DNA of 64,000 nt from Ophelia neglecta. Taxonomy: Eukaryota. The stretch spans positions 1,240,001 through 1,304,000 of the forward strand of contig OZ260663.1 of assembly GCA_965285935.1 (NCBI GenBank), written 5' to 3'. Below the pieces are notes generated by a model that had not been told where the DNA came from, did not search any database, and saw nothing but the letters and a program-made list of their open reading frames with translations. Below, piece after piece: positions 1 to 63,500 of the stretch. The stretch's first letter is position 1. Every line of letters starts with the position of its first letter. The position numbers were made by a program, and so were the translations under genes.

Positions 1-505
1 GTTAAGAATACCGATGGAAACTAGGGGTTTCACCTAACATATGTCAGACTACCGAGGGGCCCTAGCGGATTCAACCGTCAAGTTTTAGACTATCGAGGGT
101 TGATCGGTAATGTGTCAGACTACTGAGGGAGTCAAGGTAGTTCACCAGTTATGTGACAAATAATCAAAGGAGACTAGGGGGTTCACTAATTATATGTAAG
201 GCAACGGAGGGAGCAAAAGGGTTTCCCCAAACATGTGTCAGACTACCGACAGAGCCAAGATGCTTAACCATTCGTGTCAAACTACCGAAGGCCCCAAGGA
301 GGTTCACCAGTATGTGTTAGACCACAGAAGGGCACAAGGGATTTACCTGTCACGTGTCAGACTATCGAGGGTCCCAAAGGCATTAATCAATCATGTAACA
401 TGTATCAGACTGCCGAGGGAGCCTAGAGGGTTATTCAGCCATGTGTTTGTCTTCCGAGATAGCCAAGGATGTTCACCAGTCATTGTTCAGAATACCGATG
501 GAAGG
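1..505. repeat. Degenerate ~41-bp satellite (ttcaccagtcatgtgtcagactaccgagggagccaaggg-like) in an NLR intron
   Basis: agactaccgaggg-type motifs recur at ~40-41-bp spacing. Confidence 0.85.
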
Positions 506-798
506 GATGGGGTTGCAATGTGCAATTTTGATAACAATAACATGTGCTCTGTGCCAAATATCAGTCAGAACAAAGGTGTAAAAATGACCTGATCTTGGTT
601 TGTAGAGCAAAGCTATATAGGTGACCTGGACGTAAAGCTACTATATACTGATGATCAATATTGGTTGAAATGGGAATGAATTTAAATGCGCGCCTATAGT
701 AGAACAAAACGATTAACATGAAATAAGACATCAAAGTAGAATCACAGCATGTGTAAACAGTCAAAGAATATCTTAATCAGGTACTTCATTTGACTTAC

Positions 799-999
799 TC
801 GAGACGGGATATATCCGTGGAGTGTGTGACATACTGGGCCACTCCTTTGAGGTCCTCCACAGTCAGTGTCATTCCCTCGAGGTCCAGCGTCCCACCCTTT
901 CGTCTCTCTAACACACACCCGTCTAACAGAGGTACCAGACGGCCCTGGTTCTCGGGAGTTATCATCCTCATCAAACTGACACAGTACTGCTTCTCCAAC
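799..999 (-). CDS. NLR C-terminal repeat-module exon, copy 2 (67 codons, phase 2-2)
   Basis: ttacag acceptor, GA|gtaagt donor; near-identical to 2001-2219 with an in-frame 18-nt deletion. Confidence 0.8.
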
Positions 1000-3900
1000 C
1001 TGTAAGTATTGACTATGCCTACCACAAATATATATATTTGAATTCATATACGTATGACCAAGTGACACAAATATCATTATGACATTGCGTGTTTTGTGGG
1101 AGCTTTCGTTGCTTTCTTCTACCGAAGTTCTGTACTACAACCAGGATAAAAAAGTTGCATCTAAACTGAAAATAATATAATGAAGTATTGAGAGTTTTGT
1201 TTTTCATAGTCAGGCAAAAATGTCATTTGCCCCTTAACTCTATTACGCTCTTCGTGGATCACGTGTTGTTTGGTGAATATACACGTCACATGTCAATGAC
1301 GTGTTCATGACCACTTTGTTATGAATGCCAGTAATGGCGATATCTTGGGGAATTGGCAAGTGTTTGATTATAATAACAGGAAAAGACGGATTGGGGGTTT
1401 AGCGTGGCATTGATGATCAAATGCATCTTGTTGTACGAAATGAAGAGAGTTTCAGCCAGGAATGCTCTCCAAACACTACAATTATTATCAGTTTGATTGG
1501 CCAAAATTCGCGAGGAAACAATCCACAAACATTAATCCCCAGTTTCTAAAGTGTAAATAAGTAAAGAAATAAAAAAGATAACCATCACTTTCAATGTTGT
1601 CTACAGTGTTCCATGGTGAGAGTCAAAGCACAAAACAAACTAGGAACAAAAAAATAACACGCTGGTTCCGCCTGGACAACATAGAGCAATATACAATGTG
1701 GGATTTTGTGGTCCACCTCAAACGGCGGAGGGGTGTTCTGTGCCCTATAGATGCCAAATATCAGTCAGCACAAGTGAATGAAAATTATCTGATATTGGTT
1801 TGTAGAGCAAAGCTATATAGGTGACCTGGACGTAAAGCTATTATATACTGATGATCAATATTGGTTGAGAAATGGGAATGAATTGAAATGCGCGCCTATA
1901 GTAGAACAAAAAGATTAACATGAAATAAGACATCAAAGTAGAATCACAGCATGTGTAAACAATCTAACAATATGTTAAATAGGTACTTCGTTTGACTTAC
2001 TTGAGACAGGATATATCCTTGGAGTGTGTGACATACTGGGCCACTGCTTTGAGGTCCTCCATCGTCAGTGTCATGTCCTGGAGATCAAGCTTCCCACCTC
2101 GCTCTGTGTCTATGTCCTGCCCTCTCTCTAACACACACCCGTCCAATAGAGGTACCAGACGGCCCTGGTTCTCCGGAGTTATCATCCTCATCAAACTGAC
2201 ACAGTACTGCTTCTCCAATCTGAAAGTATTGACTGTGCTTATCGCAAATACAAAAATAGCACTGTCATGTAGGTTTGATGAATAAGATATATATGGAACT
2301 ATCATATTCATGTATAATTGTTCCAGACTTGAGAGAATCTAACTACCAAGGGTACAGGGTTCACTAGTCCATGTCGGACTAGGCAGAGGGATAAGGGATT
2401 TTACCAGGCATGGTTTAGACTTCCGATGGGGACATGGGGGTTCTCCAGTCATATGTCAGGCTTCCGAGCTTACTGAGGGAGACAAAGGAGTTTGCATGTT
2501 CTATGTATCACTGCCGAGGAAGCCAAAGGATTCGCCTGTTATGTGACAGACTGACAGGTAACCGAGTAAGCAAAACTGTTCACCAGCAAGGTATTAAACT
2601 ACCAAGGCACCAAAGGTATTTTTCAGTCATGTTTCATACTACCAAAGGAAGCAGTAATGTGGTAGACTACCGAGAGAGTTATGAGTTTTCACCAGTCATG
2701 GTTCTGACTACCTAGGGCAGCGTGGTTATTCACCAGTCATGTATAAGTCTATCCAAGGAGTCGGAGGAATAACCAGCATGCTACAGTTAAGCCAAGGAGG
2801 ACATTAACCAGCCATGCGTCAGTCTACTGAGGGAGCATAGGTGTTCATCAGTCATGTGTCGGTCTACCTACCCAGTCAAGAGGGTTCACCTTTCATGTGC
2901 AGCCTGCCGAGGGGTTCCTCAGTCATATGTAAGGCGATGTACTTAGGTGTTCACCAGCCTTATTTCTGACTACCATGTGAGTAATACGTGTTCACCAGTC
3001 ACGTGTTTGACTATCGAGGAAGCCAATGGTTTTCAATATTCATTAGTCGGTCAAAAGAGGGAGCTAAGAGTAAAATTTAACGGTCTACCGATTGAGCAGA
3101 ATGTATTTACCAGTCATGCGTCAGACTACCTAGAGTCGATTTTCTTCCCCATATCAAATACTTGAGACAGAGTTGCCAAAAGGCGTTGAACCTCCTTCGT
3201 GTCGTGTCTAGCATGGAGGAGAAAGTGGCGGCGGCAGCTGTCGCCCATGCCTTCGCCTCCAGGATGCGCTCCCCGATCACAGCTCCATTTTTACTGCCGA
3301 AATAACGGCCATAGATCTTGCTCTGGACCATATCATCCAGTCTAGAGACAGAAAATTTGTTATCGCCTCAGACTCAATGTCGTCCCTCCAGGCACTAGAA
3401 GGGTTAAGCTGGTCTAACCCTTTGGTTCTCTCCCGGCGAGAAACCTTAAATAAAATCCCCAAAAGAGGAAAAATGTTGTACTTGGGTGCCCAGCCACGTG
3501 GGCATCAAAGGCAACGAGGCTGCCGACAAATGTGCAATAGGGCACTGGAAGATCCCATCTTCCAATCAAAATCCCGTCTTCTGACTTCAAGAGCCCAATA
3601 AACCAGTATGGCTGGAAACAATGGCAAACCGCCTCGGACCAGGCCATAGAAAACAAACTGCACTCTGTCTGCCCCACCATACCTAAATCATTTCAACAGC
3701 CACTGGCCTCGCCGAGGGACGACTTGATCATGGCTTGTCTGCGCATCGGCCACTCTCATTTTACACACTCATCTTCTGAGAAGAGAGGACCCAACTTTTT
3801 GTGAGGGCTGCCAATGCCAGATTACCATCCAACACATTCTGTGGGAATGTAGCGATTTCGCCGAGGCTAGATACCGTTTTTATAACGTTAACAGCCTCAA

Positions 3901-6900
3901 AACATTATTCGACAAGATCTGCCCACAGCAGATCGTTGGTTTCTTGAGGTCTATAGATGTCTACTACTAAATGTAGTAGATCTTAAACGTGAAAACCATA
4001 CTTAAAGTGCGAAAGTTTATGGAACTTTTTAGTCAGAAAAACATCTGACCCACCCGCCTAGAAGATATCTTTATAAAATAGAGCACAATAACCGCTTACT
4101 TCTTACTATTATCCCCATGTTAATAAAAATAGACATTACAATAAACGATAAACTATACCCAACTTAAGACACTAAATGACCCACATGGTGTCTATGTGTC
4201 GTTAAGCCCCAAAAATCCAAATCCAATCCTAGAGTCGAAGGAGCAAATGCGGTTCCCAGTCCTGTGATATTCTATTGTGGTAGACACGGGGTTTCTAGAT
4301 GACCCAGGAGATCAAAGGGTTTCACCAGTCATGTCTCAGACCACCGAGAGTGCCATGAGAGTTCATCAGTCATGTGTTAGTCTACCGAGGAAGCCAAGGA
4401 TGTCCACCAGTCGTGTTTCAGAATACCGAGGTAAGCGTTTGGGTTGGAATTTTTGCATCATTAACAATAGGATGTGGGTGTGGCTAATAGCTCGTAAATA
4501 TCAGTCAGAACAGGGGGACAAAACGATTTGATATCTATGTATAGCAACAACTACACACTAAAATACTGCAATGTCTTAGAATGATCAATACCGCTCGTTT
4601 TAGACCTAGGGCCTTGTGCATCTACTTCAACCTGATATACTATCTTGTGTTGAAAATGCACGTGTTCAGTCACAATAAGCGTGACTGGTTCAATTTACAG
4701 AAGTAATATTATCAAGTACTATCGAGGAGACTTTACATCAATTTCCTCTAGTATTCAGGAGCAATTTTACACCTTTCTTTGGTCTTGTGTTTACTGAGAC
4801 ACTTTCGTTTGTTTTGTAACCTGACTCGAATAAAAAATAAATTGACTATTTCTTTCGGCAAGTGAAATCAATTGTTTGTTTTGAAATATTTTTTTTACAT
4901 GTTTATTTACTGATTGTGTGCTGGAGATTGATTTATTATTGTGTGTAGTGCTGTGGCAGCTGGTTCCTGATTTTGACCAATTTAATGGACTGTTCTTGAC
5001 TAATGATTGGCCTTTCTCTGCTGGGCTGGTATTAAGGTATTTAGACAATCTGGAAAAAATTGACTTTGCTCATCCTGAGTAAAAGAATGTGTATATATCG
5101 CTGTGAATATGTTGCCAAATGTACAAATATCTTTTTTGTTGTTTCTTCAGTATGTGTACCAAGAAAATTAGCGTCAGCAATTGATACAATCAAGTTACAA
5201 GCGCAGCCTAAATAAAATAACGAATCATTAGAAGGATTAATTGTTCATAATGCATTGCTAGGGTGCTCTGTAAGCACAGCTGCAAGTAAATGTCATTGTC
5301 AATGTACATGCTTCCCGGAAACATTATTACAGTTCTTGTAAACGTCACTGGAAAAGGAATAAGAAATCAGATTGACCCTAATAGTTATGTCATGTACAAG
5401 AATTAACCCGTTTCTTGTTCTTTTAATAGCCAGTGTATTCCCATGCTATAAGTTCAGGCCATATGTTAACAAATAAGCAATATGTGAACATCTGAGATGT
5501 AAGTTAAAACACGTACCTCAGGGACTTGGCCGCCATGGACCATTGGAGGCAAAAGGCCACTGCCGGCATGTGCTCCGGCAGGAGCCCCCCCGGCATGTTG
5601 GTTAAATCCAACACGCCAGATTTAATCACCAAAGGATCTATCTTCTGAACAAGTTCTATGTGGTTACCCTCTGCAGCACATCTTAGTAACTGGAGTCGTC
5701 CCAGCTTGGTGTTATCTTTTCCTTTTCTGGTGAGAGACGGTAGAAATTTAAATCTTCCTTCATACTCAAGAACCAAAGCATCAAAAAGTTGAGTCAAGCG
5801 CTTGTGGAGAGTTTTGGTTTTGATGGTGTTGTCTATCGTTTGAATCAGTTTCTGCCCTAGAGGGTTTCCCATGAGTCCGGACAGATATAAGAGAACCATA
5901 TTGAACGTGTGGGATGATGAGCGACTGGTTATCATTTTGATGTCAGCCTTTCTCCATGTAGTAGCAATTTGTAGAGCACAAAGAAACTCTTGTAAACTAA
6001 AGTGTAAGAATGCCCCAATTTTCTTCGTGGGCTCTTGAGGCATGTCCGGACCATCCGCATCAACGTCCAAAAGACCGCAAGGGAGGTCGCTTTCGTCAAT
6101 GGCATGTTTTAGCAGTGTCTGACTGTCAAATATAATCTGAGGTGAACTCTGAAGCATGCCCCAAGCAGCCAGGGACATCATTTTGAGTAATGTTTTGCAC
6201 CATACCAAGACACCTTCAAACTTATCTTTTATTCTGGTAGTTTTTTCCCCGCGCCTGTTTAAGAAAACCAGAAGAACGTAGATATAAAGTAATGTTGCAC
6301 AGTTGATGGTTTCATGTTGCTCTAGGTCCTTGGAGCTGTAACTCAGTTCATCCAATACGACTTTGCCAGTCATGATGCATCCAAGTGGCAGTGTGCAGAA
6401 CAAATACAGTTGAGGCCGATGATCTAAATACTCCAAAACTGCCTTCTGTTGATCTGCATTCCCTTTTGCTAGGGCGAGGATGCATTTTTCGATAGATTGT
6501 CTCCCGAACCCAAATATTCTGACGGTTGTGTCAAATTCATCAGGATTAATCCTGTCGATCGGCCTTGATGTAAACAAGACACGGCTCTCTCCCATTAACT
6601 CTCCGACCATTAAGCTGTGGACGAGTTCAAGGATCCCTGCATTGTGAAGTATGTTTGTGGTAGGAAGGACTTTATCAGGAGAAAATTCTAACCAGCCTGA
6701 CAACTCATCCACTCCGTCAACAAGAAGCAAAATGTCTTGCTGGTTGGAAAAGAGTTCCTGCCTTACAGTCTCCCTTTCGGCTTCGGAGACGTTCGGACCA
6801 TGTTTCAGGAGCAGATCAAGCATGCTTATTTCAGTATTCCTTTCAACCATTAGATTAAGACAACGACAAGTCAAGGTAAAAACATACCTGAACTTTGTCC

Positions 6901-9900
6901 ATAAATAGCCAAGACCCCACTGTTCACAGGAATGTTGGACCAAAGTGCTTTTGCCGGAGCCAGCTGCTCCTAGGATCAATACTCTGCGAGGATAATCTCC
7001 CTTCTTATCAGGATCGAACAGCCTTGGCATGCCTATGTAAAGCGTGTGCTGCTGCTCAAAGCCCTGCTGTACGTTCTCTTGCCCGTGGAGCAAGACGTTC
7101 CTCGGCACTAATAAGAGAGCAATGGAAAAACACGGCTTTACCAACATCCAAGCCAAATTCCTTCTGAATTTGGCGGTTAGAATGTCCAGACTGCTTTTGT
7201 TGCATTTGTTTCAGCGAGTTTTGGTAGAAACTTTCAGCAGGTTTTCCTAAAATAATGAATAAACCACATATAACAGAAATCAGTTATACTCAATCATCTT
7301 AATAATTATCGTGAAATTATTAACTCTCAAGACTTAAATAAAATAGGCAAAGATGTAACTCGACAAAAAGTCAATTAAAATAAATATTAATTGTCTAGTT
7401 ACGCCTAACGAGCATGCCAAGCATACCGATCTATTGATTTCCTATTAAACCAAAGTGAAACAAAGACAAGGAAAGGAGTATTAAAAAGCCGCATCATTAA
7501 TGAATTGCAATACTTGCCTGGCCGTTCATTGGTGTTCATGGTGCCTGGGTTCAGTCTACCACGTCTTAGCGATCTAGTATCATGCGCATGGCCGGATTCT
7601 GGCATGGAGGAGGGGAAATGAATACCTTCAGGCTGCAGTTTTGTACTGGGAGAAGCTGAGTAACATATTAAAAATAAATCATAAAGTCTCGGGATTATAG
7701 TAACCATTTGAGAGAGGACAATGTCTTATTGACAACTAAATCTCAGAAAACCATGCAATGCTCTTGCCTTGAGGACTCTTTCAACACTACTGCCTGTAGA
7801 AGGTAGATACCCATGTAGAAACATATATTCGGAGACGGAAGTGTTAAAGTAAGTAGAATCGTGTATCTCGAATCTAAACTATATATTATGACTATTTGGT
7901 AGTTCTAGCTACCAATGTGTACACCACTAGCCCGTCATGCGTTATGCCTGTAATAAGTAACACACCCGGATGTTTGTGATCAATATTAATCGGTGGTCGG
8001 TGTGTTTATAGTTACCCAACGAGACAAGCTAGTTTTCTTCGCATTCCTCAAGCTAATTCTAATCTGGTCAATATAACTATATGACACCAAGGCTTTAACT
8101 TTTACGACCTACTGCGCCAATGTGTAGATTTTAGTTTCTCTTTGCCATTTCTTTGCTCTTTGTTATAAGCATCCGTGTTCCTTGTTTAGATGTACCTACA
8201 CCATTAGCTGCTGTTTTATTATCTGTATTATTAAATATGTGAGCCATTTATGTTTATGGCCCTCTGTGGACTCTTAATGGGGCATATAAGTAATCTTAAC
8301 TTCTGCCCCAATTGCCTTGGGAATTCCACTGCTTTCATTAATTATACCTTCAGTATACTGATGTTACAATTATTATTAATTTGTTTTTGTATTATATTTT
8401 ATGTCATTTATAAGAGTGATCTAATATTCTTTTTCTTCTCGCCGAACCCTATTAATTTCATGTTATTCTACATTACTACTACTGTTAACCTTTACACTGT
8501 ACATATCCCTTTGGCAATAAACAACATCAACATAAAAACAAACGAGATATGATACGTTTACAACCGCAACAAGGGAAACCTGCTCCCAAGCCTCCACATA
8601 TGCTTCAATGATGCGGCCAATATAGGAGAAGAGTCGCCCGGAAAACGATTGGGGGGTTCTGCGGCCCAATGCCATGAGGTATATGCCTAATGACACTCCA
8701 TCGACACACGACAGTATGGGACAAAAACAATAACTAAACCCTAAAACTTTGTCATAGAACCTTTAATGATTGGCAGTACTGGGAGGCACCTAACAAACAC
8801 CACTGTATATGTGAACTGAGGTAGGGACATAATTCAGCCATACTAGACGCCAGCTTATCTTAGGCTGTGCAAACTTTGTAATGATGGTGTAAAGGACGAG
8901 AAGCATTTTCTGCTAACTTGTCGGGATCTTCATGAAAAAAGATAATTTTTCATGTCGAAATTATTGGATCTTTCGTCACCTCTTATGTACTTCTCAGACG
9001 CCGAGAAATTTACTTACCTTATGTCATCAAAGGACCTTAACATTGTGCACATTGTAGCGAGGATGGTGTTCTTGCTGCTTCAGTTGAGAGATGAGTATCT
9101 CTCCCCCGGGACAGCCAGATCCCCTTCCTTGAATTGACTTGAAAATACCTCGTGTCACCGAAATACATCGGCGTAGGCTTGGCGGGGGTTGTGTTTTAGG
9201 TGGGAGACCAACGTCTCTCGCTTGTGGCAGCGAGAGCGCTATCTTTGAATTTAATAGTGCAGGCTTATGTGTAATTCCGTAGTGATTTTGTGCCAAAATT
9301 GATTTTTTTTGACGGATTTGGGACTATTGTGAACCATATTAACTGAAAAGCTTAGGGTCCAAATTTATCGAGCCGTGGAATCCTCTTTTTCGGCCATTTT
9401 TCAAAATGGTATAATGGTACTATGTGCATGTGTGTGCCTTTGTTGCATGACGTTGTATTTGATAGATGTTCATGTGTGCTACATGCATGCTTTATATTTG
9501 AAATTTATGTTGTTTAAATTGTATGGACGTCCATAAAAACAGCCCAATATTAACGGGTGTCGTGCTTGTGTGTGTAAATGCGACAATTGTATTTTTAGAA
9601 TGTACATTATAAGTCAGTGATGACTTCAATAAATCATAAAATCTAAACCTAAACCTATAAAATACATGTGTGTAAAATGTGTTAATTGTCAGTGGTACGG
9701 ATTTGTAAAAATTGTGGATTATTGGATTAATGGAATTAACACTAACGCCACTGAGCCTGGGTGTGAAATGTGTAGCTATGTCTAGAGAACTTTTCTTCAT
9801 TATACAACCTGTGTGTAACTGTTTGTGTGTTCTGTCTTCTTCTGATGCAATGTGTCCTTTCAGTCATGCATTTCGTGAAGATGGTTACAAATATTTATAT

Positions 9901-12205
9901 GATGTGCGCTATTGCTTCTGGGTTGTATTGTGTGATAAAAACAATCTGGGAACTTTGTCAAAGCATGAAGGATAATGATGTTGTTGCAATGCATTTGGCC
10001 AGTAAGTTATCTTTGCAATAAGATAGCAGAGAAGAATTGTTAAAATTAATTTGCCAATCATTTGGGCATCTCTGTGACAAACATGTGTAAATTTGATTTG
10101 TTATGAAAGCTTAATAAATCGTTTTTAATAATTTGCTTGATTTACTATGTTTTTCGTATTCCAATAATGAATTGTGCAATACACTGATTTACTATGTATT
10201 CCATCTTCTCATTGTTAATTCTACAATATGCGTATCAAGTTGTAAAAAAAACCCATTCAATCTCTATTAAGACACCTGTGGTATATGATAACCACCCAAT
10301 ATGGTTTCTAACCAAGGTCTGCTGGCTAGTACACACCAGTTGACTAGACATGCATATATAGTGTGTATGTGATAAATGTTTACATGTTACTCACCTGCTG
10401 TGACCTTTTTGGAAAAGTTCTCCCTATGAGCTGACCCTGTCTCCTTGTCTCCTTGCTCTCCGTGTCTCCTTGTCCACACTGGTCGGGGCAATAGGAATTG
10501 TCCCAGCTGCTCGGACGAACCCGGTAATCGCCCTGTGGTGAAATCAAAACTACCTAAATGACTGCAAGTACCAATGCATTATTTTTGCAACTGCGAATCT
10601 TTGCATTTATCCGTAGTTGATGTTTTATACCTTGTCTAGTGCGTGTCCCAGCATTAATATGTTCTTGTAGCTGCTTTAATGCGCTGATAGGTCTACACAT
10701 CAACACGTCTAACAGTAGTTCAGCACGTTCATGTGTTGTTTTCCTGTGTTGAATTTCTTCTTTCTGAGCTGCAGTGACGGCCCCTATTCCTACTAGTTTA
10801 TTCAGGTTGTCAGGTGCACCAATCTCCTTTAAGCCATCTACATAGTTTATCATATGCGGTCCCATGGACCTTTTATCCTTTTTTGTAAGAACGTCGAGGT
10901 GGCCTGGAAAGTGAATAAAAGATATCGACCAACGCGTGTAGTGAAGTTAGGTGGAGGCATTACGTAGTTGTAACTATAATGGCTAAGCGTGGGTTGTTGA
11001 CACGGTATTAAGTCTCATGTGCTAGTATAAGCTAAGGCCGATGTAATGTTGTGCCTCATTGCTCAATCTTATTAATACCCTAATATATGATGTTTAAATA
11101 CCTTCGCGTATGATAAGGGAACTTAAATGTTCCTGGGATGACTTGGTCAACGCATCACAAAACTTCTCTATCCTAGCATCATTGGCGCCCTTTTGTACAA
11201 TCAGCACAAGAGCTTCGGCTTTAGTTAACCTTCCGACTGTGGCTTCTATAGTCTGCCTTTGGTTGTCAGTGATAACGTCGTTTGCGCAGAGCTCTAGGAG
11301 GAAATGTCCCTCAAATCGGATGTTGTTGATTAGGGTGTCTTCGTGCATTTTCAATTTTGCCAATAATCTAGATTGTACTTTTACGATGGCACCTGTAATA
11401 TTTCAACAGTGTATTGTGAGTCAGGAAATGGAGGCTAAAGGAAAACTTTGATATATACAAGATAAGCTGTAAGACCAAATCGACTATATGTTCCATTTCC
11501 TTTGTTTCATACAGTATGTTTGCAGTATGCCTATATTTATCTTATTGTATACACTATTTGGGCTCGGTTTGCCTTCTACAATTACTTTTGTGACATACTG
11601 TGCGGGCCGGTAGGCCTGTTATATTTACTTTTATGACCCACTGTATGGGTCGGCCGGCTTGTCATATTTACTTTTATGACCCACTGTATGGGCCGTCCGG
11701 CTTGTTATATTTACTTTTATGACACACTATATAGGCTGCCGGCTTGTTATATTTACCTTTATTTTTGTGTCTTGTTTTCATGACTCTCAGAACTTCATAC
11801 TGCTTGGATACCTCTAATGTGTCAAGAATTGCAGCGAATTGATATTTGGAGCCTCTGTGTATTATATCAAGTAGCGCGGCAGCCTGCCGCCCGGGCGTGG
11901 TTCCAGATTTGATTTCGTCTTTCTGCTCTGTAGTAATCACTTTCAGCTGACAGAGAGGCTGGAGCATGGGAGCTGTATCGAGATTCCTGACCAGATAATC
12001 ACGGTGAGATAGCAGGTGTTCGCGTGTCTCTTTGTCGAGACGTTCATTGTCTTCTACAAATAATGGGACAGGGAACTTAGAGTTTAATATCCAAGATTTT
12101 CTTGTCTAAAAGACAGAAATGTTTATATCGACAGACGAATTCGACGATTAATGTGAGTTTCTTACCTAGGGCGACATTGCCTTCATACACATAGGAGGTG
12201 GCCAT
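799..12205 (-). CDS. NLR-family gene (CARD-CARD-CARD-linker-NACHT-WH-HD2 plus repeated LRR-like modules), multi-exon; 3' end lies beyond the window start
   Basis: Phase-compatible exons: 12205-12166, 12053-11757, 11392-11102, 10903-10631, 10532-10395, 7655-7518 (or 7626), 7107/7246-5517, 2219-2001, 999-799. NACHT motifs are unambiguous. Confidence 0.85.
2001..2219 (-). CDS. NLR C-terminal repeat-module exon, copy 1 (73 codons, phase 2-2)
   Basis: tttcag acceptor, AA|gtaagt donor; LEKQYCVSLMRMITPENQGRLVPLLDGCVLERGQDIDTERGGKLDLQDMTLTMEDLKAVAQYVTHSKDISCL carries an LxLxxxxLTxED first-LRR-like motif. Confidence 0.8.
2320..4432. repeat. Second array of the ~41-bp satellite, interrupted by a LINE insertion at 3140-4227
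   Basis: Same consensus at 2320-3139 and 4228-4432 (ttcaccagtc-like motifs at 4321, 4362 and 4403). Confidence 0.85.
3140..4227 (+). mobile_element. 5'-truncated, internally deleted I-group (I/Nimb-like) LINE with RNase H and CCHC domains
   Basis: FLPHIKYLRQSCQKALNLLRVVS, SSIFTAEITAIDLAL, FVIASDSMSSLQAL, WVPSHVGIKGNEAAD, LRIGH...CEGCQCQITIQHILWEC; (aatcc)n tail; 11-bp TSD cctagagtcga at 3129-3139 and 4228-4238. Confidence 0.9.
5517..7246 (-). CDS. NLR NACHT-WH-HD2 exon (5' boundary 7246 or 7107)
   Basis: Walker A RVLILGAAGSGKST, Walker B ILLLVDGVDEL, sensor-1 VLFTSRP, IFGF, CTLPL, winged-helix FLHFSLQEFLCAL; CTGAG|gtacgt phase-2 donor. Confidence 0.95.
7518..7655 (-). CDS. Probable second NLR linker exon (138 nt with GC donor, or 30 nt with GT donor at 7626)
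   Basis: ttactcag acceptor; open frame SPSTKLQPEGIHFPSSMPESGHAHDTRSLRRGRLNPGTMNTNERP; CAG|gcaagt or GAAG|gtattc donor, both phase 1. Confidence 0.5.
8862..9090 (+). mobile_element. Remnant of a CR1/L2-group LINE ORF2 C-terminus
   Basis: Translates as RLCKLCNDGVKDEKHFLLTC...KFTYLMSS, the zinc-finger tail typical of these LINEs. Confidence 0.65.
10395..10532 (-). CDS. NLR linker exon (138 nt)
   Basis: cacag acceptor, CAG|gtgagt donor, open in phase 1 (RLPGSSEQLGQFLLPRPVWTRRHGEQGDKETGSAHRENFSKKVTA). Confidence 0.65.
10631..10903 (-). CDS. NLR CARD-like exon 3 (divergent)
   Basis: LNKLVGIGAVTAAQKEEIQHRKTTHERAELLLDVLMCRPISALKQL matches CARD helices 2-5; ttccag acceptor, CAAG|gtataa donor, phase 1-1. 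Confidence 0.75.
11102..11392 (-). CDS. NLR CARD exon 2
   Basis: LKMHEDTLINNIRFEGHFLLELCANDVITDNQRQTIEATVGRLTKAEALVLIVQKGANDARIEKFCDALTKSSQEHLSSLI is CARD-like; ttacag acceptor, GAAG|gtattt donor, phase 1-1. Confidence 0.85.
11580..11756 (-). repeat. 42-43-bp tandem repeat starting at the CARD-1 exon donor
   Basis: Minus-strand gtaaat/gtaatt recurs at 11756, 11714, 11671, 11628 and 11585. Confidence 0.85.
11757..12053 (-). CDS. NLR CARD exon 1
   Basis: REHLLSHRDYLVRNLDTAPMLQPLCQLKVITTEQKDEIKSGTTPGRQAAALLDIIHRGSKYQFAAILDTLEVSKQYEVL fits the CARD pattern; tgtag acceptor, AAG|gtaaat donor, phase 1-1. Confidence 0.85.
12166..12205 (-). CDS. NLR first coding exon (MATSYVYEGNVAL)
   Basis: AAAATGG start context; CTAG|gtaaga phase-1 donor; tttgcag acceptor upstream with the exon starting at 12267, so 5'UTR exons lie further upstream. 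Confidence 0.7.
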
Positions 12206-26269: not shown

Positions 26270-28640
26270 ATAATTATAAGTTTATTCTCCTGAACTAAAT
26301 CAGAGCTACATATAGTAAACATATATACAATTCAGCGGGCACAATATTCAGCAACTTATCAATTTAAAGATATATTCAGTAGACATTATGACATTCAAAG
26401 ATAAATACATTCAACAGACATAGTGGCATTCATAGCGTTACAATTCAATAGATCTGCTATATACGAATCAATCAATCTGGTATATACGAATATGAAAAAA
26501 CATAACCTTGGCATATCTTCCGTAGGTAGCTACGACTAGTTCGACTAGGTCAACCTAACTATTTACCATCTGACAACTTTCATCATTCCCAAGGAAGACT
26601 GGGACTAGCCGTGGAGAGTCTGACAGATTATACAGCATGACAAAGTCTGCCGGCCCTAGTAAATTTACGATGTCTTCCCACAGTATATTCCTCAAATCAG
26701 TGAGGACTGGGCACCCTCCGTCACAAAACATGTGTTCAAACGGGTTAATTACATACTCGTCACACAATACACACGAGACTTCTAAACTTTCATTAAACAG
26801 TGAGAAGAGATATACCAGATTCATGACATTGTTAAGTAAAGATGGACTGACCTTCGCAATCTCATACAAAACAAAAGGAGTTTCAATAAAATGCGGGTGT
26901 ATTTTTTGAAACATAGCGCAACCAGGCTTTGAAATTGCAACAGAATTTCGCTGGACTGACTCTTTGGATGCAATCGCCTCCTTTACAATTTGCTTCCACG
27001 TTTGTTTTGTAGGGAAACTTAGGGAGGAAAAAAATTGCAACCAAGTTTCCTGCAGATCATATTTTTGGAGAATTCTCATAACATCGGGCACGAAACCTTT
27101 ACAACTATCTTTGGTATCGGTGCAGTCATAATTCTGGAGTCGAATTTCAAACAATGGCGCAGCTAGGTGAGTCTGTGGAAGTGTGGCGAGTTTTAGCATG
27201 AACATGAGCTTTTTCTGGTCTATGATCGCTTCGATAGAGGTCCAGCCAATGGCTGACAAAACAATCTCTGTGTGCGTCCGTGGTTAGAAACCTTGTATGG
27301 ATTTTGCAGCTTTCCGATGGACAACTTCCAGTTGGCTGTTCCCTGATATCGACAGGTCATTCCAGATTTCAGCGCCGTGTAACATCGAAGGGAGACATAT
27401 TTGTGTCCACACCTTCGACGACGTTAATGGGTTAAGCCGGTTATTGACGACACCAATGCCAGACAGCCTCCCAAATAACTGCCTACCCTTTTTACACATT
27501 GAATCTGTCCGAGAACTAGAGACAAAATTTGCCGACAGTTCTATTCCAATATGGGTAAGTCTAAAAACTTCTTCAATGGGTTTGCCATTAAGACACCGTT
27601 GGCGATTTTCTTTGTTTTTCTATGTTGAGCAGTGCTTTCTCCAAATACAACGACTTGACTTTTTGATGGCGAGAAAATTAACCTCCATTTACGGCTATAT
27701 TCTCCGGCCATATCCAGCATCCTTTGAAGGCCGTCATGTGTAGCAGAGAGGAGTGCAGTGTCATCTGCCAGTGTAGGAGTTCCAACGTCCACTCCTCTGA
27801 CTTGGAGTCCGTCTCCTGTTTGTGTCATCGTTTCATGTAGATCGTAGTAGGCTTTAGCCATAAACAATGTTGATAATACTCCACCCTGTTTAATGCTACG
27901 TGTGACTGGGAAGTAGTCAGAATATTCTCCGCTTACCCAAACACACGAACTTGAGCCATCGAGCCATTCCCTGATCAATCTCCACAGCCAGCCGCGAATC
28001 CCAAGCTTAAACAGCTTGAGTAGTAGACCGTCCCACCATACTCGATCAAAAGCTTTTTCTATATCAAGAAATGCAGCAAATACTTTGCCTCCGCGTTCAT
28101 TGAAAAACCGAATGCTCTCCTGAACACTGAAAGACAGGAGTACATTATTTGACAGTTTTTTGCAATGTTGCAGTGGACCGGGGAAACAGCTCTCTTCCAT
28201 CCAGGGCTCTAAACGCCTCATAACAATTTTTTCCAAGAGTTTGTTCAAGACTGACATCAGAGATATACCCCTGTATGAGTTTTTGTCCGTCTTGTCCTTC
28301 TTTTTACCCTTGTAGAGGGGGACAATCACACCTTGCTTCAAGGAACGAGGTATATGGCATGTGAGAATGATATCATTATAGAGCATGGCCAGTAGTTTAT
28401 ATAAGCTGAGACTTCCGAATTTAGGTGCTCATAAACTATTCCATCCCGTCCCGATGCCTTGCCGTTGGGGAGAGATTTTGCTATCTCTTCCACTTCTTCT
28501 GCAGAGATAGATTCCAACGGAATGTCACAATCATGCTCTGGCGAATCAGCTGATTCTGTACAAATCTGCAGTTCACTTTTCACAGTATTAGCAAAATCAT
28601 TATCAAAACAGTCTGACTCATTAACTTGCTTTTTTTTACT
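26270..28640 (-). mobile_element. Frameshifted non-LTR retrotransposon ORF2 (RT plus C-terminal Cys-rich region), 5'-truncated
   Basis: LPNGKASGRDGI, IVPLYKGKKKDKTDKNSYRGISL, FLDIEKAFDRVW, IKQGGVLST, PTLADD, CVLCDE...EHMFC spread over four broken ORFs; AATAAA-type 3' end near 26285. Confidence 0.92.
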
Positions 28641-29299
28641 TATTTTTTTAGGGGACTTATTTGAAAATGTTGGAAATATTTGAACCGGGAAACTCTCAAT
28701 CGTTTTATTATGCTTTCTTATATCCTTACCTCCATTATTGGAATGTAGTATGGGGGAATTATCATTGTTATTTAAAACCACTGTTCATGGTCAAGAAGAG
28801 TGTTACAATATAACTAACAGGTCTTAGCTGTAGAGGTTTCACTATGCCACTGTTCTGTCAGCTGGATATATTTGTGTTGCACAATGTAAGTATCGCTATC
28901 ACCATGGCCTGCTTCCATCACCATTCTTTTCGATGTTTAATACCAACTCTAATACGCATACCTATGTAACTAGACAAACAGGCCAGCTCGCTACTCCCTT
29001 TGCTAGACTGAACCTGGTGCGTAGGCCTTAAGATTTCACGGGGCTTGTTTATATAATTGTTAACGCCATGATAGAATTTATGTTGTCTTTGCCTGATTTT
29101 AGATAAAATATCAAAAAATCTCCAAACTTCTCCAATGATATATCTGCATCATATTTTATTACAAACCATTTACATGTCCACTTATCATATCCATTTGCAC
29201 AATTATAGCAAGTGTTTGACCAACTGTAAAGGGGCATATAAGCACCAGCTTCAGCTCCGATTGATATATCTTTTATTTCAGTATTTTATTCAGGATAAG

Positions 29300-58838: not shown

Positions 58839-59157
58839 CACATTTATTAAGGGCTCGGTATCTGGTTTATTACAGTTCAAAGCCATTTCACTTTTTTATA
58901 TTCTTATGTTTCATTTTTCAACCAGTTTACGGCAAATCAAGGAAATACAAGCTTGCCATATATACACCATACCTATATACACACAATGAGCAACCACTCC
59001 ATCTTTTAGCCACACGCAATCCTCAATTTCAACAGCCTCATCTAGAAGCATCGGGGATCCTTACAACACCAGATAACAAGAGAGCTACCACCTATGCAAA
59101 GGACGACTGGGCCTGGATGTGGGATCGAATGCTGGTCGCAAGTGAAGCAGGACGATA

Positions 59158-60513
59158 GGACGGTACCAAGCTTATTTACAGTTGGGGGGCTGGAGATCCA
59201 TGCTTGTGGGGCGAGGGGACGGTTCCAAGCTTGTTTACTGTTGGGAGGCTGGAGATCTATGCTTGTGGGGCGAGGGGACGGTTCCATGCTTATTTACATT
59301 TGGGAGGCTGGGGATCCATGCTTGTGGGGCGAGGGGACGGTTCCATGCTTATTTACAGTTGTTAGGCTGGAGATCCATGCTTGTGGGGCGAGGGGACGGT
59401 TCCAAGCTTGTTTACAGTTGGGAGGCTGGGGATCCATGCTTGTGGGGCGAGAAGACGGTTCCATGCTTGTTTACAGTTGGAAGGCTGGGGATCCATGCTT
59501 GTGGGGCGAGGGGACGGTTCCATGCTTATTTACAGTTGGGAGGCTTGAGATCCATGCTTGTGGGGCGAGGGGACGGTTCCATGCTAACTTACAGTTGTTA
59601 GGCTGGAGATCCATGCTTGTGGGGCGAGGGAACGGTTCCATGCTTGTTTACAGTTGGGAGGCTGGAGATCCATGCTTGTGGGGCGAGTGGACGGTTCCAT
59701 GCTTATTTACGAGGCTGGGGATCCATGCTTGTGGGGCGAGGGGACGGTTCCATGCTTGTTTACAGTTGGGAGGCTGGGGATCGATGCTTGTGGGGCGAGG
59801 GGACGTTTCCATGCTTGTTTACAGTTGGGAGGCTGGGGATCCATCCTTGTGGGGCGAGGGGACGGTTCCATGCTTGTTGACAGTTGGGAGGCTGGGGATC
59901 CATGCTTGTGGGGCGAGGGGACGGTTCCATGCTTGTTTACAGTTGGGAGGCTGGGGATCCATGCTTGTGGGGCGAGGGGACGGTTCCATGCTTGTTTACA
60001 GTTGGGGGGCTGGAGATCCATGCTTGTGGGGCGAGGGGACGGTTCCATGCTTATTTACAGTTGGGAGGCTGGGGATCCATGCTTGTGGGGCGAGGGGACG
60101 GTTTCAAGCTTATTTACAGTTGGGAGGCTTGGGATCCATGCTTGTGGGGCGATAGGACGGTTCCACGCTCATTTACAGTTGGGAGGCTGGAGATCCATGC
60201 TTGTGGGGCGAGGGGACGGTTCCATGCTTATTTACAGTTGGGAGGCTGGAGATCCATGCTTGTGGGGCGAGGGGACGGTTCCAAATTTACAGTTGGGCGG
60301 CTGGAGATCCATGCTTGTGGGGCGAGGGGACGGTTCCAAGCTTGTTTACTGTTGGGAGGCTGGAGATCCATGCTTGTGGGTCGAGGGGACGGTTCCAAGC
60401 TTGTTTACTGTTGGGAGGCTGGAGATCCATGCTTGTGGGGCGAGGGGACGGTTCCATGCTCATTTACAGTTGGGAGGCTGGGGATCCATGCTTGTGGGGC
60501 GAGGGGACGGTTT
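59158..60513. repeat. 59-bp G-rich minisatellite, ~23 copies
   Basis: ggacggttccatgcttgtttacagttgggaggctggggatccatgcttgtggggcgagg repeated. Confidence 0.98.
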
Positions 60514-63500
60514 CTGAGTAATGCAGATCAATTAAATGAACTATTTTGATTACTGATTTTGCTCTGTCTTCCTGGTCCATTGGTTAGCAGCGACACCTAG
60601 AGCACCAGGCTAGTCCAGCAACATGGAGGCCTTGTGTATAATTCTCTGATGAAGGTTGTTTCCTCCTGTTGATCATTCACGAATGGGGATTATGTTAATA
60701 CATTAAGATGAGCAGCGATAGTCATTATAAGGCAACTTACCCAAATGTGATGCAAATTGTCATCAACAGATTATGGTTCAAATTGTCACCTTGTTACTAA
60801 ACAATGAGCTAATCTATGGCATCTGGTCTTTTAATTTAAGGTGTCGTGAGAGTGTTGCCTGGCAGGAAGCAATGGACAACTTTAACTGTAAATGTAGTTG
60901 ATCCACAAGGGTACTCTACGTAATTTCTTTCAGTAAAAGCAGACCAGCAGCAGGAGCGCCAGCATACATCACATGCCAATGATGGGCTTTTATTTACTGT
61001 AAGGTCATGTAGTCCAGAAAATACTATTAACCATAAGGTACAAGATTGGTGTATCAATATTACAGTAAACTGTGGGGGGTTTCTAGAGCACAAAGGTACA
61101 CCACAACTCCCCACCCCCCGCACTCAGATGCTTAGTTCCAATCTAGGAAGTTCAAATAATAAATCCGAGAAGAGCACATTAGATTTCATAGCATTACTAA
61201 GAGACACTCAGAGATCTTGGTCAAGAGGGTCTTTTTTTGCACATATATTATAGTTTGCAATACAATATGATATTTATTATACAATAGAGTCAATTAATTT
61301 TAATACATCAGTCACAATAATGAATGTATTTAAGTTTTCATTTACTTTTTATGTGCGTTGTCCGATTTTCGCCGATTTTCGTAATGTTTTTGCAGCATTT
61401 TTGCTTCCAATAGCAGGCAATATTTACATTATTATATCTAATGTTATTGTTTCACCTACACAGTATGGATTTATCAATGGAAATTATTCATGACACGAGT
61501 CAGAGCATAAAACAAAAGATTCATTGGCCGACAAAGGAAAACATGAAAGATGGAACATATTTCCTCTTTGTCTTCTGTGAACTCTGACGGTTTTATTTTT
61601 TTTGCGCATCATGTGACACTATTGAATTCTAAGGAGAGTTTATGTTGGACTAAATTTATAACCATAGATCTTGACTGAAAGATCAGCCCGGAGTGTTTTT
61701 TTTAGGTATATCATTAATGAATTTCTTGGTTTTTCCTCTGTAAGCAGGGAACTTGAACATCCATCTTAAGTTTTAGCAAATTTCACATTCAGTCTCACAC
61801 TTGTGAGAAAGCTTACTCCAACATGGATCTCTCTGTTCTACGTAGAACTCTAACTCGTTTGCTTTGTGCTTTGACTCGCATCATGTTCAATGGATGATTA
61901 CTTCTCATTGCAGGTGAAGTCGTTTATTGTTATTACTAATTTCAAAACCACCTTAGTAACGGGTAGAGAACCAGAGATTGATGTCGGTTCGACTGCAGCT
62001 GACAGTTCCGGATGATTTCGAACTGATTTGATAGACTATTCAGGGTTAATGGTGTATATAAGTATACATTCCATAGCAATAGATAATAGGAAATTATGTT
62101 TATTGTCCATTGTGTGTCGGCAGTGTCTCACAGGTAGCATCTAAATTGTTCCAAAAGAGTTCAAAAAAAGAAGGATCATATCAAGTTTAATCTAAAAATT
62201 AGTTAAAGAAAAAGTCATGATGAGAATGAATGGAATACATGGCAAAATCATTAAAAACCTAGAGTATGCACAGGGTGATCATAACCATTAAAATACATGT
62301 TGAACAAATAATAACTCGCGCAGTTTATTGACCATATTACACATGAAGATACACAACACACAAGCAAGTAGGTATACGGTTTGTGTGATTCCAGCACACA
62401 AGAGTGTCTGATTTATTTTCTTTGAATGTATATGTATATAATCATAAAGAATTATACTACGTTATTGCATCTGGTATATTCTGATTTATTAACATTAATA
62501 TACGGCTGACAGTATTAAGGTCACAGTACCCCGTTATGTTTTATTGTAAGAGGAGGGCGTGGAAGTGGGTCGCTCCTTCTTAAAACATCTATTGCCAAAG
62601 ATGGTCCAGAGAACCTGTTTATATTCAGCGGCAACAATCACAAATGGTTTGGTCCTACAGTCAATAAGCCCAGGTACTTAACCCGAGATATGAATCCAAG
62701 AATATACACATCATACCTCACAGACTATAACAAGAGATACCAGGGCGTCTAGCTCAACATGGGTTGTCTACGGTTTACAGCAGCAAACATAAGTTGTATA
62801 GTAATGTTTCAAATATAATAGTTCATATAACAATAACATAGTTGTGTGGGGCGTTATGCATTCTCATTAGCCGAACTTGAATAATTAGCAGCCCAACTTA
62901 GCTATTTGCTCAGGACCACGGAGGGCTGCTAATTATTTATTTAGGTACACTGTGAAATAGTATGTCCCAGAGACTACTACAATCTTAAGAGTATACTGAA
63001 CCCCTACTGGATGTAACATGTTATAATTAATTTCTGTCGACGATTACCATATATACAACAAACTTTCATAATATATAGTGCCCACTAGGTACCAAGAAGC
63101 CAATGAGTGGAAATTTCTGAAAAAAAAAAAAAAAATTATGACTTTGTAGCACCTTTTGTCAGAAAATATAGGTTTTTTTTCAAAGGTTGCCATGGAGCAC
63201 TTAAATTATTTATAAGTGTGACAGTTGTGCCAATGTGTTCCTAAGATTGTAAACTAGTAAAGGGTCATTCAGATTTTCCTTATTCCTCTCCTAACCAGTG
63301 ATTTTAATAGGCTTTGTAAGTAGTCATCTAATATAGTACTCATTATTGGCTATCTCAAATTTGGCGATTGATTACTAATTGATTGAAAATCTTATAACAA
63401 ATCTGAATGACCGTTTACTAGATCTAACTCTTGTTGACAAGTTCCCGTTTGCGGATTCTAATTCGGATAAAGTTTGACGAGGCCAGCGTTGTTTGAAAAT

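Follow-up and report, generated by a model that had tools for sequence, protein, structure and literature searches.

NOD-like receptors (NLRs) are usually described as a NACHT domain combined with leucine-rich repeats (LRRs), or, for fungi and for a part of the early-branching animals, as NACHT with WD, ankyrin (ANK) or TPR repeats. In NLRP3, the LRR exons have a length of 171 bp and encode one pair of repeats each (28+29 residues), and alternative splicing has been shown (Hoss et al. 2019, PMC6642158). The WD, ANK and TPR repeats of fungal NLRs are highly conserved and variable in number (Dyrka et al. 2014, PMC4986451); in Podospora, the repeat number has been shown to be polymorphic among individuals and positive selection has been demonstrated formally (PMC4986451). 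Lineage-specific NLR expansions are known from invertebrates and include the annelid CARD-NLRs, with 55 NLRs in Capitella teleta (Yuen et al. 2014, PMC3879445). Here, we analyse an NLR gene on the minus strand of a 64,000-nucleotide stretch of Ophelia neglecta DNA (the window; C5:1240001-1304000 of the 762-Mb assembly), and coordinates of modules and exons are window positions unless a contig is named (Table 1). Based on the collective evidence, the gene is best explained as a CARD-CARD-NACHT receptor that carries, at the C-terminus, an array of lineage-specific modules of 62-73 residues, not a canonical LRR domain, and we hold this explanation to be reasonably probable.

The region of interest is the 3' part of an intact receptor gene of the NLRC type. 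Two features that define membership in this group of animal NLRs, a NACHT domain with P-loop and an N-terminal CARD, are present; a C-terminal LRR domain recognised by LRR models is absent, with no Pfam LRR family at E ≤ 1 in the two single-module exons (A and B) or in the two-module exon (C) described below. Searches and fold predictions were done with single exons. The large NACHT exon matches Pfam NACHT (E 7.7e-24; 84.8 bits vs a cut-off of 26.7) and NOD2_WH (E 5.5e-6; 26.8 bits vs 23.1), together with a weak match to NLRC4_HD2 (E 0.03; 15.3 bits vs 33.1), and both the P-loop GAAGSGKS and the Walker B motif LLLVDGVDE are intact in its open reading frame. NLRP3 and NOD2 are the closest solved relatives (Protein Data Bank (PDB) chains, E 1e-18 to 1e-19), in alignments that run no further than the winged helix and stop short of the exon's tail, and fish NLRC3-like proteins are the nearest named proteins in a word-index search (23-26% identity). 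The acceptor of the exon is predicted from a pyrimidine tract and the sequence ttattag/TG (slash at the exon border). The exon ends with AG/GTACGT (donor GT 5516-5515), two nucleotides past the last full codon, and this donor is kept in 30 paralogs. The two CARD frames would be joined to the NACHT exon by splicing. A third open frame (10557-10946, minus strand), a candidate third CARD-like exon, gave no Pfam match at E ≤ 1 and is unconfirmed.

Exons A and B each encode one module. Both begin with one codon-completing nucleotide and end with two extra nucleotides, thus are frame-preserving, and both continue the frame of the NACHT exon, whose end at 5517 also leaves two extra nucleotides, in agreement with the shared donor phase pointed out in an earlier, sequence-only reading of the window. 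Conservation between A and B spans from about 20 nucleotides before the acceptor to about 260 nucleotides past the donor and then breaks down in pairwise alignment. The same reading had proposed that two near-identical phase 2-2 exons were duplicated along with ~250 bp of downstream intron, and the intron copies are indeed 91.7% identical over 254 nucleotides. The exons are separated by a single 18-nucleotide in-frame gap, exon A carrying a 6-residue acidic loop insertion, and their peptides are identical over the first 32 residues, so that the indel, the identical N-terminal part and the quoted peptides are all as originally described. Also borne out is the concentration of substitutions in the C-terminal half: the first 31 codons contain three differences, all three synonymous, compared to 17 differences in the other 35 aligned codons (nonsynonymous distance, dN, 0.153; synonymous distance, dS, 0.280). 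The wording near-identical is generous for the second half of the exons, which is ~84% identical in nucleotides.

The modules are homologous to the end of the NACHT exon. Comparison by hhalign of a profile of 27 modules with one built from 18 NACHT exons, over their last 66 residues, gave a probability of 92% (P 6.7e-7) over 55 collinear columns, and a separate profile-profile run scored 32.8, as against 10.5 ± 2.5 (maximum 20.2) in 100 column shuffles. Both halves of the module contribute, the helical half with a z of 3.8 (above all 60 shuffles) and the LRR-like half with a z of 8.0. At the level of nucleotides, no similarity of the NACHT tail or of intron 1 to module or module intron was found. 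Recent copying of the tail into the modules is thereby ruled out, and the tail is understood as an old and diverged first unit, the "repeat number zero" of the array. The original suggestion that the modules re-use the NACHT-exon end is thus upheld as homology and corrected as to its age, the relation being an ancient one and not a recent re-use. Judged from the spacing to the winged-helix match of NLRP3, not from alignment, the tail would sit where the first LRR starts in vertebrate NLRs.

Extension of the sequence past position 1, proposed by the sequence-only reading in the expectation of an expandable array, added two modules that are fused in one exon. This exon C lies 6.0-6.4 kb to the left of window position 1 and consists of one module of 62 and one of 71 residues that are not separated by an intron. 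Like exons A and B, it has a length divisible by three and is of phase 2-2. A hidden Markov model (HMM) of the module, applied to 30 kb beyond position 1, detected no other piece of the array. With the NACHT tail counted as diverged first unit, together with exon A, exon B and the two units fused in exon C, the gene comprises five units as read from the sequence. The idea of modules as expandable cassette exons is accordingly retained for the duplicated single-module exons and has to be modified in that much of the variation takes place inside the multi-module exon, in units of 186 nucleotides. The arrangement that was named as contradicting that idea, only two copies followed by standard 28-residue LRR exons, is not what the locus shows, no standard 28- or 57-residue LRR exons having been found within 23.5 kb. 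The multi-module exon ends with a strong phase-2 donor in three lineages (this gene, the C5:3269411 paralog and a metagenomic relative), hence at least one further exon is expected.

The array is shared by a large paralog family in which the number of modules differs. The exon-plus-intron unit has at least 40 scored copies at 85-95% identity (of 159 first-look candidates), and the scored copies are all located in NLR clusters on C5, C2, C1 and C12. The NACHT tail has 163 matches, nearly all in open frames of 580-660 residues, about 50 of them at ≥ 55% identity and more than 100 at 30-40%. The two-module exon has 160 matches, with stacked 186-nucleotide matches in relatives, and multi-module open frames of 145, 207, 268-269, 331 and 567 residues correspond to 2, 3, 4, 5 and ~6 units. 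By coordinates, paralogs range from 2 to at least 7 modules (Table 1). A paralog at C5:1.86 Mb, at a distance of 620 kb, shares 98.9% identity with this gene around exon A (C5:1857726-1861196 against window 1752-3727) and only 93% around the NACHT exon, and the sequence that follows its one module exon resembles what comes after exon B. These differences in identity and the mosaic structure point to exchange between paralogs, and suggest that gene conversion or unequal crossing-over may have been involved. Many paralogs additionally harbour a relic of the first module half only, 1-1.5 kb upstream of a full module exon; the relics have a 2-residue deletion and often a stop codon, and none was detected in the gene studied here.

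Module copies evolve as coding sequence with a clear division between the halves. All 30 full-length copies have an open frame, whereas of 81 intron frames of equal length none is open; the indels in exons have sizes of 18 and 24 nucleotides only, while five of seven intron indels are out of frame; and the AG/GT splice sites are kept in 27/27 distinct copies. In pairwise comparisons, codons 1-31 have a dN/dS of 0.43 and codons 32-72 one of 0.93, at similar synonymous rates. The intron distance of 0.135 is close to the dS of 0.149, and the co-duplicated intron is therefore viewed as a neutral passenger, not a conserved element. Parsimony counts on the tree give a nonsynonymous-to-synonymous ratio (omega) of ~0.5 in the first and ~1.5 in the second half. 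The dN/dS analysis among copies that the sequence-only reading had called for thus returns ~0.4-0.5 and ~0.9-1.5 for the two halves, and the first half is under purifying selection as judged from these codon counts (omega 0.43-0.51). Change hot spots are found in loop columns 33, 34 and 42 and in columns 47, 48 and 50 following the LDL motif. The latter three columns show 29 nonsynonymous and 0 synonymous changes in a parsimony count that is post hoc and not corrected for recombination. If the module is an LRR in this part, these positions would be exposed sites flanking the strand, and the pattern is suggestive of positive selection there.

The first ~30 residues of the module (LMRMITPENQxRLVPLLD) are nearly invariant in the family, and are followed by the indel-bearing loop and the LDL motif, after which a variable stretch leads to a conserved segment predicted to form a helix. 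AlphaFold, applied to the two-module exon with a 3-row alignment (mean predicted local distance difference test, pLDDT, 68), places in each module two helices, then a short strand at LDL and a helix of 13 residues, and a last strand where the exon ends; an alignment that spread single modules over both halves of this exon was discarded for folding. The NACHT C-terminus is modelled as helix-helix-strand-helix, in an order matching the modules, at low confidence (pLDDT 53). Matches of the module to LRR proteins in phmmer are confined to query residues 93-133, in the second half (E 2e-10). LRR_6 clusters are among the nearest both by language-model features and by shape, both weak; the ESM feature search on the metagenomic relative was below the level of useful recognition and gives LRR_6 as a weak lead only. 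With moderate confidence, we interpret the module as a predicted helical hairpin (helix-loop-helix) plus one LRR turn of the ribonuclease-inhibitor type (LDL strand, 13-residue helix). Structure searches by Foldseek, VIA-align and Atlas returned no significant match, to a solved HD2/LRR junction or otherwise; given that the model is only moderate, the absence of a structural match is no evidence of a new fold.

Relatives among public proteins are very rare. An exhaustive phmmer search of 1.84 billion representative proteins returned three proteins, of which two are ordinary LRR proteins and the sole true relative (P0006) is 35% identical and encoded on a metagenome contig (L067). On this contig, a NACHT exon of 40-51% identity is followed, after ~190 nucleotides, by one exon of three modules, and the module HMM also matches the relative's NACHT tail (E 7.6e-4). 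From this shared layout, the order of NACHT tail and then modules is older than the divergence of the two organisms. No further relative emerged when JGI metagenome contigs were scanned with the module alignment. Open frames with transmembrane-looking segments occur on the plus strand 3-9 kb after the module exon (L067 13515-13949 and 19921-20301); they are probably neighbouring genes, not NLR exons.

In the mechanism proposed for the CARD-CARD-NACHT receptor, the length of the array changes in two ways, by tandem duplication of a single-module exon with flanking intron and by expansion or contraction of 186-nucleotide units inside the multi-module exon, and sequence is also exchanged between paralogs. 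The exons would be spliced in series, and the array could form a solenoid that continues from the NACHT tail and serves as ligand-sensing or auto-inhibitory end of the receptor, with the variable residues beside the LDL strand as a possible binding face. A number of observations weigh against this explanation. No exon was found in the 23.5 kb downstream of the two-module exon, and the 3' end of the gene was not located, in a search that combined tblastn of fish NLRs, scanning for motifs, a tblastx comparison with the metagenomic relative and a Pfam analysis of every open piece of at least 38 residues on the gene strand (138 in all); genome-wide, only 14 matches to LRR_6 exist, none of them downstream of any family member. 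No RNA run carrying the locus was found, and the three runs that were found are short DNA contigs covering introns and exons, without exon-exon joints. The module counts of paralogs, except for those seen directly, rest on coordinates and strand only. The dN/dS near 1 in the second half also fits relaxed constraint. The models of the fold given above are weak, and no module has a Pfam LRR match. For the two-module model, Foldseek against the PDB found none at E ≤ 0.001 (best E about 2), VIA-align in its wide mode gave Z < 5 with generic helical repeats, and the Atlas shape search remained at a template-modelling (TM) score ≤ 0.45, with LRR_6, HEAT and NACHT clusters among its rows.

The same evidence allows for other explanations to be weighed. 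That the modules are ordinary NLR LRRs, each exon representing the usual two-LRR unit, drifted and loop-lengthened, so that the architecture would not be unusual, accords with the similarity of the second half to LRR proteins, with symmetric, frame-preserving exons like the 171-bp LRR exons of NLRs (PMC6642158), with the short strands modelled at LDL and at the exon end and with LRR_6 clusters among the weak Atlas neighbours. We nevertheless consider it unlikely: the units measure 62, 67, 71 and 73 residues instead of 57; the LxxLxL pattern is missing from the conserved first half, for which the model gives helix-loop-helix; no Pfam LRR model responds at E ≤ 1; no horseshoe-type PDB match was obtained, ribonuclease inhibitor appearing only at a probability of 0.14; and a single relative emerged from the representative proteins, among which LRR proteins are abundant. 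Replacement of LRRs by helical repeats has happened in other invertebrate and fungal NLRs, and the array could analogously be an all-helical domain of the HEAT/ARM/TPR kind in which the LRR-like motif is a sequence echo without a beta-solenoid. The model is made mostly of helices, three per module, the top VIA-align rows are helical repeat proteins (Z 4.0-4.7), and HEAT clusters are among the Atlas shape neighbours. However, Z < 5 is background for helical models according to the tool's own note, the LDL-plus-helix half aligns to true LRRs, and the unit is homologous to the NACHT tail, itself placed by spacing at the vertebrate first-LRR start, which makes an all-helical array, in our assessment, a distinctly unlikely case.

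Least probable, to the extent of being quite remote in our estimate, is the view that segmental duplication in an NLR cluster left the module exons behind as dead sequence, outside the mature mRNA of a truncated gene or pseudogene. It would account for the missing RNA run, for the terminal exon not found, for the dN/dS of about 1 in half of the module and for the stop-bearing relics in paralogs. Open frames in every full-length copy and in none of the intron frames, exon indels in frame only, splice sites kept in all copies and purifying selection on the first half all speak against it, as do the intact NACHT and CARD exons and the NACHT-then-modules order kept in a relative only 35-50% identical. 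A wider interpretation of the preferred explanation, that of a lineage-specific array on a CARD-CARD-NACHT receptor, is put forward tentatively and is in our view rather doubtful: the module would represent an NLR sensing repeat of a class not described before, in which a helical hairpin is fused to a single LRR turn. It would have been seeded by the NACHT-exon end and diversified in an animal lineage as fungi diversify their NLR repeats. Duplication of cassette exons, in-exon gain and loss of units, exchange among paralogs and positive selection next to the beta-strand, perhaps with exon skipping as well, would then together produce a germline repertoire of varied length and surface.

Tandem DNA repeats and retroelements make up part of the surrounding sequence. 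The introns flanking the module exons are filled with arrays of a satellite of ~40-50 bp (recurring motif GACTGGTGAA), which create many spurious plus-strand open frames. Long open frames at C5:1225955-1228139 (L032 5955-8139) were rejected as exons: they translate a 33-nucleotide minisatellite and are open in several frames, up to 302 codons, and the UCR_6-4kD matches there (E 8.9e-10, 0 stretches) are spurious and minisatellite-derived. Overlapping long open frames at window 59094-60549 (plus strand), with a repeating peptide of ~38 residues (GWRSMLVGRGDGSMLVYSWEAGDPCLWGEGTVPCLFTV), are probably the translation of a further tandem DNA repeat. In window 3000-4400, joints and loose ends of DNA contigs are numerous, and further open frames occur around the reverse transcriptase at window 26555-28781.

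Table 1. Coordinates of the receptor gene, its paralogs and other features (window positions unless a contig or locus is named; units are those in the multi-module exon).
Feature	Position	Strand	Details
First CARD exon, open frame	11677-12105	-	Exact exon ends not fixed; Pfam CARD E 1.3e-8, 35.1 bits vs cut-off 23.9
Second CARD exon, open frame	11097-11402	-	Pfam CARD E 7.1e-6, 26.4 bits vs cut-off 23.9
NACHT-WH-HD2 exon	5517-7107	-	1591 nt; entered in phase 1, left in phase 2
Module 0, last 66 codons of NACHT exon	5519-5716	-	hhalign to module profile
Module exon A	2001-2219	-	219 nt, 73 codons, phase 2-2; acceptor AG 2221-2220, donor GT 2000-1999
Intron co-duplicated with exon A	1740-2000	-	~260 nt; aligned to 545-798
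Module exon B	799-999	-	201 nt, 67 codons, phase 2-2; acceptor AG 1001-1000, donor GT 798-797
Intron co-duplicated with exon B	545-798	-	~260 nt; pairwise alignment with the intron of exon A
Two-module exon (exon C)	C5:1233559-1233957	-	399 nt, phase 2-2; same acceptor type, GA/GTAAGT donor
Array, this gene			2 single-module exons; 2 units
Array, paralog	C5:1863003 (NACHT-tail position)		1 single-module exon; 3 units; coordinates
Array, paralog	C5:2718319		1 single-module exon; 5 units; coordinates
Array, paralog	C5:10611008		2 single-module exons; 4 units; coordinates
Array, paralog	C5:10803720		3 single-module exons; 2 units; coordinates
Array, paralog	C5:102348308		2 single-module exons; 5 units; coordinates
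Array, paralog	C5:3269411		0 single-module exons; 2 units, 430 nt after NACHT exon; seen directly (L066)
Array, 91%-identical paralog	C1:146658063		4 single-module exons, seen directly; no multi-module exon found within 7 kb beyond
Array, paralog	C2:107922622		Up to 7 single-module exons; no multi-module exon; coordinates
First-half relics	L004 3359-3442; L009 451-525; L010 2813-2896; L014 3277-3357		Paralog loci
First-half relics	L023-L026 ~2937-3043; C1:146663359-146663544		Paralog loci
Satellite arrays	1-560; 2340-3140; 4230-4560; L031 5300-7900		L031 3559 = C5:1233559
Decayed retroelement fragment in intron 1	3000-4400	+	Antisense, not part of the receptor; weak RNase-H-like RVT_3, E 0.011
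Retroelement reverse-transcriptase open frame	27541-28386	-	Pfam RVT_1 E 5.4e-27

Lastly, the locus has importance in that a single invertebrate genome contains a family of about 50 or more genes with a repeat that has no family model and almost no public relatives. This repeat is built and varied by the known logic of receptor repeats, with exons that are symmetric, units in tandem and a variable half next to a conserved half that acts as scaffold, and it shows that the end of a NACHT exon can serve as the first unit of a repeat array. The difference in module number between genes looks like a way to vary the sensing end of the receptor, and the family would, if expressed, constitute a compact natural system for learning in what way recognition by an animal innate receptor is determined by the number of repeats and by a small set of variable positions.

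Like the LRR exons of vertebrate NLRs, the module exons supply C-terminal repeats after a NACHT-WH-HD2 exon, one half of the module is LRR-like, and the exons are symmetric with their border at a predicted short strand; frame-preserving exons of this type permit gain, loss or skipping without frameshift. They differ from the vertebrate exons in module length (62-73 residues on exons of 219, 201 and 399 nucleotides, not 57 residues on 171), in a conserved half that is not LRR-like and is unseen by Pfam LRR models, and in that part of the array consists of in-exon tandem units without introns. With the large invertebrate NLR expansions and the fish NLRC3-like genes, the family has in common the clustered organisation, the one big NACHT exon and the CARD effectors; the repeats of those genes, however, are LRRs described as recognised by the Pfam LRR clan, whereas the repeat here lacks a family model. 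There exist analogies to the fungal NLR repeats in the closely similar units, whose number differs between related genes (here between paralogs), in the signs of exchange within the family and in amino-acid change at few positions. The host, however, is an animal and no WD40, ankyrin or TPR match was found in Pfam; the resemblance is one of the mode of evolution, not of family membership. The unit fits neither the vertebrate nor the fungal repeats, from which it is distinguished by length, by a half that is not LRR-like, by having no family model and by being almost absent among public proteins.

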